A stretch of 63,436 bases of DNA, counting the filler, from Olpidium bornovanus S191 (taxonomy: Eukaryota > Fungi > Olpidiomycota): NCBI GenBank assembly GCA_017911155.1. It is 28 parts of 28 records of this genome, joined end to end, with 100 filler letters (N's around TTAATTAATTAA, not from the genome) between each part and the next. Parts side by side here need not be neighbours in the genome. Positions count along the whole stretch, not along the records: positions 41,304 to 45,323 come from JAEFCI010008895.1; 27 more parts are not named here. The stretch is one strand, 5' to 3'. Both the position numbers and the translations under genes were made by a program. This document shows, piece by piece, positions 43,825 through 45,323 of this stretch. The stretch's first letter is position 1; each line of letters begins with the position of its first letter. The notes beneath the pieces are model-generated. The model saw only the letters and a program-made list of their open reading frames with translations. It did not search any database and had not been told where the DNA came from.

Positions 43825-45323
43825 TTACCGCCGTCTGTGGGCGGCAAGAACCTGCAAGGCCAGCACGGCCGCGCAGGCGGCGACGGTCTGCGCGGCGGAA
43901 GACGCGGCACGCGGGGCGGCGGCCGAAAAGCGGAGCGAGGTGTCCTTGCGCTGGTCGTCCGTGGGCGGCGCGACGACGGGGTCGGGCCCGGACAGGGACG
44001 TGTCGGGCTGGACCTGGAAGAGCGCGGCCACCGCCGCCGAGCGTTGCTGGATGAAGGTGAGGAGGCCGAACCCGACGCCCGGGACGCTCGCGTTCACCGC
44101 CAGCCTCTCGGCCGCGGCCGTCAGGCCCGGCTCAAAATCGGTGGCGTTGTATGGGCTCGCCAGGCCCGGGGACAGCCGCGCGAGCGACCGGTCCCACTCG
44201 ACCTCGGGTCGCACCCGCTCAGCGTGCGCCCGCACCCGCGCAACCAGGAACGGCTCGTTGAATACCCGCTGGACCAGCGCGGACACGTAGCCGGCGAGCT
44301 GGTCAAGGTACTTCTGGTTAGAGATAATTTTCTGGACCACCGGCCGCGGCTTGTTCGCCTGGTAGGCCGCGAAACTCGCGGAAATGGAGGAGAGCGGGAG
44401 GACGTCCGAAGTGTAACCGACGCCGAGCGACTCCCTCGGGTCGCTTGAAATGTACAACCACCGTAGCTGTCGTCGGCAGAAAAATTCCGGGATGAATCGT
44501 TGCGTCGATAAACTCGGGTGCGTTTCCCTCCTCGCGCGCGCACCGCGGGAAACTCACCCGAACAGGATCTTCGTACAATACAAACGAGTCCGACGCTCCC
44601 CACGCGCCACGCCTGAGGAGGCGAACGCGGGTCACCCCATTCAAATGAAACCACCCATCGCAGAGGACCGGCACCCGACGAAAATGGAGCGCAAACAGAT
44701 GTCCGACTCACATGTACCCGGCTAGCCACTCGACGGCGACCGTCTTCAAGAGCAGGTCGATGTCCACGTTGGGCGCGAGATTCTTCTCCAGGCCTGCCTC
44801 GTCGCCGGGGGCCAACAAGCTTAGCGGTTCAATCCAGCGGGCAATGAAGCTCTGAAGGGCGTTGGCGATGGGGTTGCCGCCTAGGTAATGGACAGACACC
44901 TCCGGGTAGTCCTCTCGGCGCGGGCCGTTGTATATGAAGTAAAAAGGGTCTTCGCCCTGAACGAGCGAACCGAGCGCGCTGTAGGACTTGAAATCCGGCT
45001 GCCCGTGGAGCTCGGCGCGAAGGAAGGATTTTGAAGTCGTGTCGTCCGCGAATAGGTATAAACCCAGCGGGGTCTGCGAAACGTAAGTGTCGGAATAATT
45101 GTAAACACGAGCGCATCGGAAATGGCGCGACAAAACGGGGACGGTGGGGGGAGAGGGGGGGAAGGTTGAGACGCATGCTCGCCTGGTTTGCGTACACGCG
45201 GACATGGTTCATCCTCGGAGCGGGAAGGCCGGCCGCCGCCAACAGCGCCTGCGCACAAAAAGATGGGAACGTGGTAGGCGACGAGAATTTCACTCGGTAG
45301 ACAACATTCTTTTTTGAATCACG
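43825..45323 (-). CDS. cotH: CotH-family (atypical kinase fold) probable GPI-anchored surface protein, 5' truncated; exons 45183-45323, 44712-45073, 44558-44612, 43825-44466
   Basis: LLAAAGLPAPRMNHVRVYANQTPLGLYLFADD; VDIDLLLKTVAVEWLAG; FVLYEDP; RPVVQKII...VRPEVEWDRSLARLSPG; GLLTFIQQRSAAV; Ser/Ala linker and hydrophobic C-terminus. Exon phases are consistent. Confidence 0.85.

Follow-up and report, generated by a model that had tools for sequence, protein, structure and literature searches.

A CotH-family gene of Olpidium bornovanus with arginine in place of the catalytic-loop aspartate, probably encoding a pseudokinase-like protein

Introduction

CotH proteins are spore-coat kinases in Bacillus and host-cell invasins in Mucorales. 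FAM20A, a pseudokinase of the secretory pathway, has lost a catalytic residue but has been preserved by selection alongside active paralogs. CotH and FAM20 are assigned to one group of kinase-like families (PMC9758233), and the D228Q and D251A mutants of CotH from B. subtilis are catalytically inactive (PMC7821199). A GRP78-binding motif, (M/Q)-x-QTNDGAY, has been described for CotH proteins from Mucorales (PMC9973265), and GPI anchoring is predicted for approximately one in four CotH proteins of zygomycetes (PMC9391592). Among zoosporic fungi, Olpidium is the nearest relative of Mucorales and Mortierellales (Chang et al. 2021, cited in PMC9391592). In the literature on CotH pseudokinases, Olpidium CotH, and catalytic residues of fungal CotH proteins, we found no dead CotH clade.

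Here, we describe a CotH-family gene of O. bornovanus S191 with Arg at the position of the catalytic-loop Asp. It is a multi-exon gene on the minus strand (43825–45248) of a 4,020-bp contig of the O. bornovanus MAG (JAEFCI010008895.1, positions 41304–45323 of the window, that is, of the whole analyzed stretch of 63,436 nucleotides). An earlier note, made from the sequence alone, had described its product as a surface CotH protein with three degenerate catalytic motifs.

Results

Exon–intron structure and transcripts

Transcript contigs of four sequencing runs (X1, X5, X9, and X10) were aligned to the whole contig 41304–45323. All three internal introns are backed by transcript contigs, from at least three studies (Table 1); among them are the two junctions proposed in the earlier note around the short catalytic-loop exon, 44712/44612 (contigs of X5 and X9) and 44558/44466 (X1, X5, and X10). 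As it had also stated, the spliced frame contains no stops: it is open over approximately 400 codons, the terminal TAA being the first. The last exon, which also encodes the C-lobe helices, is 100% identical to the NCBI protein BJ554DRAFT_1673 (P0001, 364 aa). The gene sequence was found in sequencing runs of eight studies, the best rows containing 0.72–0.74 of the sampled words; this share is close to the expectation for an intron-free mRNA and hence fits spliced transcripts.

At position 45248, contigs of X1 and X5 depart from the genome with 248–255 nt of other sequence, and record 20 of X9 ends there. Since every long contig departs at this point, immediately next to a pyrimidine tract with CAG, the segment 45249–45323 is an intron, and the upstream exons lie off the contig. 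The first 230 or so residues, expected to comprise any signal peptide, the N-terminal domain, and the ATP-contacting lysine, are encoded beyond the contig end. The transcript contigs of the gene include one of 1,351 nt in X5 and one of 1,786 nt in X1.

Table 1. Elements of the CotH-family gene and of its transcript in window coordinates.
Feature	Position	Strand	Details
End of a further upstream intron (3′ part)	45249..45323	-	Pyrimidine tract and CAG acceptor 45251–45249; non-coding; covered by no contig
Exon, 22 codons, ALLAAAGLPAPRMNHVRVYANQ	45183..45248	-	Preceded in mRNA by ...PTALREATYS from an off-contig exon
Intron 1, 109 nt, GC..AG	45074..45182	-	Joint 45073/45183 in X1, X5, X9
Exon, 362 nt, middle of CotH domain, end ...VEWLAGY(M)	44712..45073	-	64% identity to P0003
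Intron 2, 99 nt, GT..AG	44613..44711	-	Joint of 44611/2 with 44711/2, spliced in X5, X9
Catalytic-loop exon, 55 nt, RGAWGASDSFVLYEDPVR	44558..44612	-	Arg 44611–44609, Ser 44587–44585
Intron 3, 91 nt, GT..AG	44467..44557	-	Joint 44466/44558 in X1, X5, X10
Last exon, 213 codons and TAA, starts with LRWLYISSDPRESLG	43825..44466	-	Stop TAA 43827–43825; Asp (D251 equivalent) 44442–44440, Arg 44436–44434
3′ untranslated region	43510..43824	-	Contigs of X1, X5, X10 extend to 43507–43522

The deposited model P0001 begins within intron 1 and joins KTVAV to DDPRE, a splice present in no transcript contig of the four runs. Three deposited O. bornovanus CotH models skip the short catalytic-loop exon by mis-splicing around it, namely BJ554DRAFT_1673 (P0001, the gene under study), BJ554DRAFT_5489 (P0002; L002:1690–2060), and KAG5457339.1 (P0009; L003:1433–1616), and motif or domain surveys built on these models would mislead. 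The GC..AG intron 45074–45182, seen in three runs, is proof of GC donor usage in O. bornovanus, and such donors may escape gene predictors.

Roughly half of the contig evidence still contains intron 2 (record 2 of X1, record 5 of X10, and record 12 of X5); the depth of X5 record 12 is 78 vs. 85 for the spliced joint, and contig depths cannot rank the isoforms. In the retained form, ...WLAGYM is followed by an in-frame TGA at 44710–44708, and such transcripts would truncate the protein ahead of the catalytic loop. Either inefficient splicing or a regulated, unproductive mode of splicing could underlie this retention. The intronic segment CDGWFHLN was considered as an alternative catalytic segment and rejected: it lies beyond the in-frame TGA of the intron-retaining transcripts, and none of the contigs is spliced at an internal site. 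The paralog on contig L002 has introns at the same places flanking its catalytic-loop exon, and its intron at this position has no such reading. Hence the rescue of a catalytic Asp through the intronic DGWFHLN, which had been raised earlier, does not take place.

Several other features were observed on the contig. An intronless 92-aa ORF on the plus strand (42601–42879) encodes a COX17 copper chaperone (Pfam PF05051, 63 bits) with a Pro/Gln-rich N-terminal extension of approximately 45 residues; unspliced transcript contigs cover 42558–42913 in all four runs. An X5 contig contains a joint between 41845 and 41964 (118 nt, GT..AG on the plus strand), indicating a spliced plus-strand transcript, and X9 contigs diverge near 41774–42091, with loose ends at 41906, 42154, and 42161. 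No Pfam match was obtained for the ORFs near 41774–42091 (plus strand) and 41515–41789. The intergenic spacers at 42914–43069, 42503–42557, and 43643–43689 are filled with long A/T homopolymers of about 30 nt and with repeated CT dinucleotides, at which transcript contigs break; the contig is otherwise GC-rich.

Family membership and fold

An exhaustive HMMER search with P0001 produced 29 relatives. The closest ones are P0002, a mis-modeled O. bornovanus paralog encoded by genomic contig L002, and P0003 (51% identity), and the remaining ones are CotH proteins of approximately 600 aa from Mortierellales, Mucorales, an amoebozoan transcriptome, and Logan and JGI contigs. Against the Pfam CotH domain (PF08757, gathering cut-off 23.8 bits), the exon-by-exon search yielded a sole match, in the last exon (12.8 bits), and the mis-spliced model P0001 scored 16.1 bits, both below the cut-off; the sister protein P0003, a complete ORF of 613 aa on the 2,026-nt transcript contig L001, scored 79.5 bits. 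In the alignment, the gene is 64–72% identical to P0003 in exons 1–3.

The profile of the family alignment (A1), where the exons of the gene were entered as separate rows, matches B. cereus CotH (PDB:5jd9) at E 3.4e-20. The fold was tested on P0003 as a proxy for the protein of interest: among PDB entries, only 5jd9/5jda match the AlphaFold model (mean pLDDT 82.5, pTM 0.83) strongly (E 6e-16, TM 0.77 by target). The comparison with B. cereus CotH suggested in the earlier note was made here on the sister. Exon-by-exon sequence searches of PDB and a search with P0001 gave only a chance BTB match, which was discarded, and phmmer with the canonical relative P0004 found no PDB match; hence, a family profile is required to reach 5jd9. 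When the last exon, P0001, and P0003 served as queries in word-index searches of proteins, neither additional members of the clade nor a full-length Logan-derived product of the gene emerged, and its true N-terminus therefore has no reference.

Taken together, the close relatives, the family profile, and the fold match agree with the previous assignment, and it is almost certain that the gene product is a member of the CotH family. The family and fold membership is thus secure for the clade, and for the gene it follows directly from the alignment.

Catalytic motifs

In the family alignment, the Arg codon of the catalytic-loop exon occupies the column where other homologs have the catalytic-loop Asp (Table 2), and the RNA contigs match the genome at this codon. 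The Asp-to-Arg replacement, already noted from the genome, thus holds with RNA-verified junctions, and the loop Asn is replaced as well, by Ser; we have hardly any doubt that the catalytic Asp is truly missing from the mature mRNA. In the alignment with 5jd9, chain residues 224 and 247 correspond to the Asp of FDG and the first Asp of WDYD, respectively; this spacing of 23 equals that of D228 and D251 in B. subtilis CotH, and the residues were mapped accordingly.

Table 2. Residues at the catalytic-loop and metal-site positions.
Position	~20 other homologs	Gene under study	L002	P0003
Catalytic-loop Asp (D228 equivalent)	D in W-D	R	R	R
Catalytic-loop Asn (+8)	N	S	K	K
D-x-D (first D = D251 equivalent)	D-F-D	D-P-R	N-A-E	N-P-E

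The motif SDPR at 44445–44434 aligns with D-F-D of the homologs. The letters of this motif had been read correctly as a change of WDxD, and its second Asp is indeed Arg, but the key first Asp, the metal-binding D251 equivalent, is retained in the gene; it is Asn in both sisters. The gene also has an extra Asp beside the Asn position (GASDSF), where the sisters have ESSKF and DATKF. The catalytic-loop Asp is present in 13 out of 14 canonical full-length rows of A1, the exception being P0009, a deposited model that skips the loop exon; the corresponding genome sequence (L003) does encode NWDGYW. Of 41 family-conserved columns covered by the exons of the gene, 30 are unchanged, consistent with the earlier view of intact fold-marking residues, and the non-conservative replacements (D to R, N to S, F to P, and D to R) are concentrated at the active site.

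The 30-nt consensus of the loose contig ends at 45248, translated in the exon frame, reads PTALREATYS; the exon continues with ALLAAAGLP / ALLAAAGLPAPR, and PTALREATYS with the start of the exon aligns without gaps to the segment DPTALREKTFATLMDAAGLP / DPTALREKTFATLMDAAGLPTPK of P0003. The mRNA therefore contains PTALRE of the DPxxxRE motif, the Asp itself being upstream of the 30 nt read; the sisters P0003 and L002 carry DPTAL(RE). Thus, the DPxxxRE motif of the gene is intact in the mRNA, and its supposed degeneration to FPSFCAQ was a translation of the intronic segment 45249–45323.

The GRP78-binding motif of Mucorales, (M/Q)-x-QTNDGAY, is missing from the gene, as had been stated and as the alignment confirms: the aligned catalytic-loop segment is WGASDSFVLYEDP / GASDSFVLY, and P0012 and P0017 have TNDGAY/SNDGAY there.

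The Arg clade and its constraint

In the tree, which includes deposited or transcript proteins only, with short-fragment rows omitted, the gene, its paralog from L002, and P0003 form one clade (support 100/100) with a long stem, placed among the canonical CotH groups; within the trio, the gene and its L002 paralog pair with support 88/83. The Asp is absent only in the trio; in approximately 20 other homologs, all the motifs are present. The canonical O. bornovanus paralog (KAG5457339.1 = P0009, on JAEFCI010010249.1 = L003), with NWDGYW...SNF and DNDFD, falls outside the Arg clade. The paralog survey called for earlier has thus yielded, in O. bornovanus, one further gene with Arg (L002) and one canonical paralog.

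In the exon-by-exon comparison of the trio, pN ranges from 0.09 to 0.38 vs. 0.56–0.92 for pS, the silent sites being saturated. The exons share 45–88% amino acid identity, and the same Arg, with the catalytic-loop exon (65–81%) ranking among the most conserved of them. The gene is under purifying selection. The support of the clade, pN below pS, the shared intron positions, and the existence of a canonical paralog jointly suggest that the catalytic base was lost once, long ago, and that the genes have been maintained for a long time since; the data argue against decay. The clade is small and old, specific to Olpidium, with three known genes. The idea of an inactive CotH subfamily that has been kept is in line with these results, as the three members have the same Arg, are expressed, and show pN below pS.

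Secretory features

The last exon encodes two N-x-S/T sequons (NAT and NAS). The C-terminal tail, ...AASSAAQTVAACAAVLALQVLAAHRRR, is Ala-rich, has a 14-residue hydrophobic window (Kyte–Doolittle 2.41), and resembles the GPI-type tails of the relatives; the window is followed by five residues, A-HRRR, of which HRRR are polar. Such an end is atypical of GPI signals and could equally fit a short-tailed transmembrane anchor. Signal-like N-terminal segments are present in P0003 and P0004. Based on these sequence features, and with the N-terminus of the gene itself off the contig, a surface or GPI-anchored location of the product is on balance the better supposition.

Two sites distinguish the RNA contigs of X1, X5, and X10 from the MAG, and at both of them X9 matches the MAG. 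The first one is G>A at 43901, which changes a Ser codon to Phe (TCT to TTT) in the AASSAA stretch directly ahead of the hydrophobic tail; the other one, at 43764 in an A-run of the 3′ UTR, is T>A with an insertion of AA. These are probably strain differences.

Discussion

Taking all this into account, we suggest that the gene probably encodes a pseudokinase-like secretory or surface CotH protein of a small old Olpidium clade, with a binding or structural role. In all three genes of the clade, the aspartate that acts as the catalytic base of CotH kinases is replaced by Arg, and the neighboring Asn, by Ser or Lys; the Asp-x-Asp metal site is partly lost as well, and the DPxxxRE helix motif and the rest of the fold are conserved. 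The CotH scaffold would then have been kept and phosphate transfer lost, the cleft turning from acidic to basic and possibly still binding a nucleotide or an anion. The protein likely passes via the secretory pathway, may be held on the cell surface or wall through the C-terminal hydrophobic (GPI-type) signal, and might have a binding or structural role at the surface during root infection. The loss of kinase activity as such seems quite likely, the word “inactive” being used because of the analogy with the B. subtilis CotH mutants.

It is unlikely that the protein is still an active enzyme, that is, a kinase or another nucleotide-dependent transferase with a non-canonical catalytic arrangement, where the D251-equivalent Asp binds the metal and another residue serves as the base, or the Arg takes part in a different chemistry. 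Catalysis of other reactions has come to light for some proteins originally classed as pseudokinases, and an enzyme would agree with the D251-equivalent Asp and the PTALRE motif being present in the gene and with the loop around the Arg being among the most conserved segments of the trio, as expected for a functional cleft; on the other hand, the sisters have Asn at the D251 equivalent, leaving no acidic metal ligand conserved across the clade, the extra Asp of GASDSF is not conserved in them, and the D228Q variant of B. subtilis is inactive. The opposite extreme, with all three catalytic motifs dead, including DPxxxRE, and hence no nucleotide binding at all, is barely conceivable: the open frame of genomic 45249–45323 does give FPSFCAQ at the expected spacing, but it is an intron, PTALRE in the mRNA and DPTAL(RE) in the sisters take its place, and the D251-equivalent Asp is present.

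Nor does a decaying or unproductive gene seem at all probable, even though relaxed constraint could account for the long stem and tip branches in the tree, and the retention of intron 2 in X1, X10, and X5 record 12, giving ...GYM-stop, would leave most transcripts without the full protein. Completely spliced transcripts are present in X5 and X9, with a frame open for approximately 400 codons; amino acid identity of 45–88% despite saturated silent sites, pN well below pS, and the same Arg in three genes argue against decay, and most of the family-conserved fold residues are unchanged. We thus retain the pseudokinase-like reading, of which there is a bolder and rather improbable version, namely, that the charge inversion of the cleft (Asp to Arg, Asn to Lys/Ser, Asp to Arg/Glu) has produced a pocket for anionic ligands on the zoospore or cyst surface; pectin or phospholipid of the host root would be candidate ligands of such a basic pocket. 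The plant viruses transmitted by O. bornovanus bind to its zoospores, and the gene product might even be a part of the virus-attachment surface of the zoospore.

Comparison with known systems

With the Bacillus CotH kinases (B. subtilis; B. cereus, PDB:5jd9/5jda; PF08757), the gene product shares the domain family and the fold, the DPxxxRE motif, and the D251-equivalent Asp, but it has Arg for the catalytic Asp, Ser for the loop Asn, and Arg for the second Asp of WDxD. Unlike Bacillus CotH, the gene is eukaryotic and intron-bearing, its product would be of a secretory or surface type, and its relatives have an additional N-terminal domain. Substrates of the CotB/CotG type are a feature of Bacillus CotH, and none are known for this protein.

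The CotH proteins of Mucorales and Mortierellales (Rhizopus CotH2/3; P0012 from Parasitella and P0013 from Podila) have the same fungal architecture of approximately 600 residues as the full-length relatives of the gene, with a signal-like N-terminus, an N-terminal beta domain, the CotH domain, and a hydrophobic GPI-type tail. Unlike the gene, they keep every catalytic motif, and the host is a mammal for the Mucorales invasins and a plant root for O. bornovanus.

The likeness to FAM20A consists in the kinase fold, the secretory pathway, and the missing catalytic residue, although the gene product itself is not a FAM20 protein, and no sign of its pairing with an active paralog, or of its activating one, was seen. 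The canonical O. bornovanus paralog P0009 comes from the same genome and has the same family and tail type, but its catalytic motifs are intact. Thus, the Arg clade, conserved and expressed in planta beside a canonical paralog, in the zoosporic lineage nearest to terrestrial fungi, offers a natural comparison of catalytic and non-catalytic CotH proteins and bears on whether fungal CotH proteins need kinase activity.
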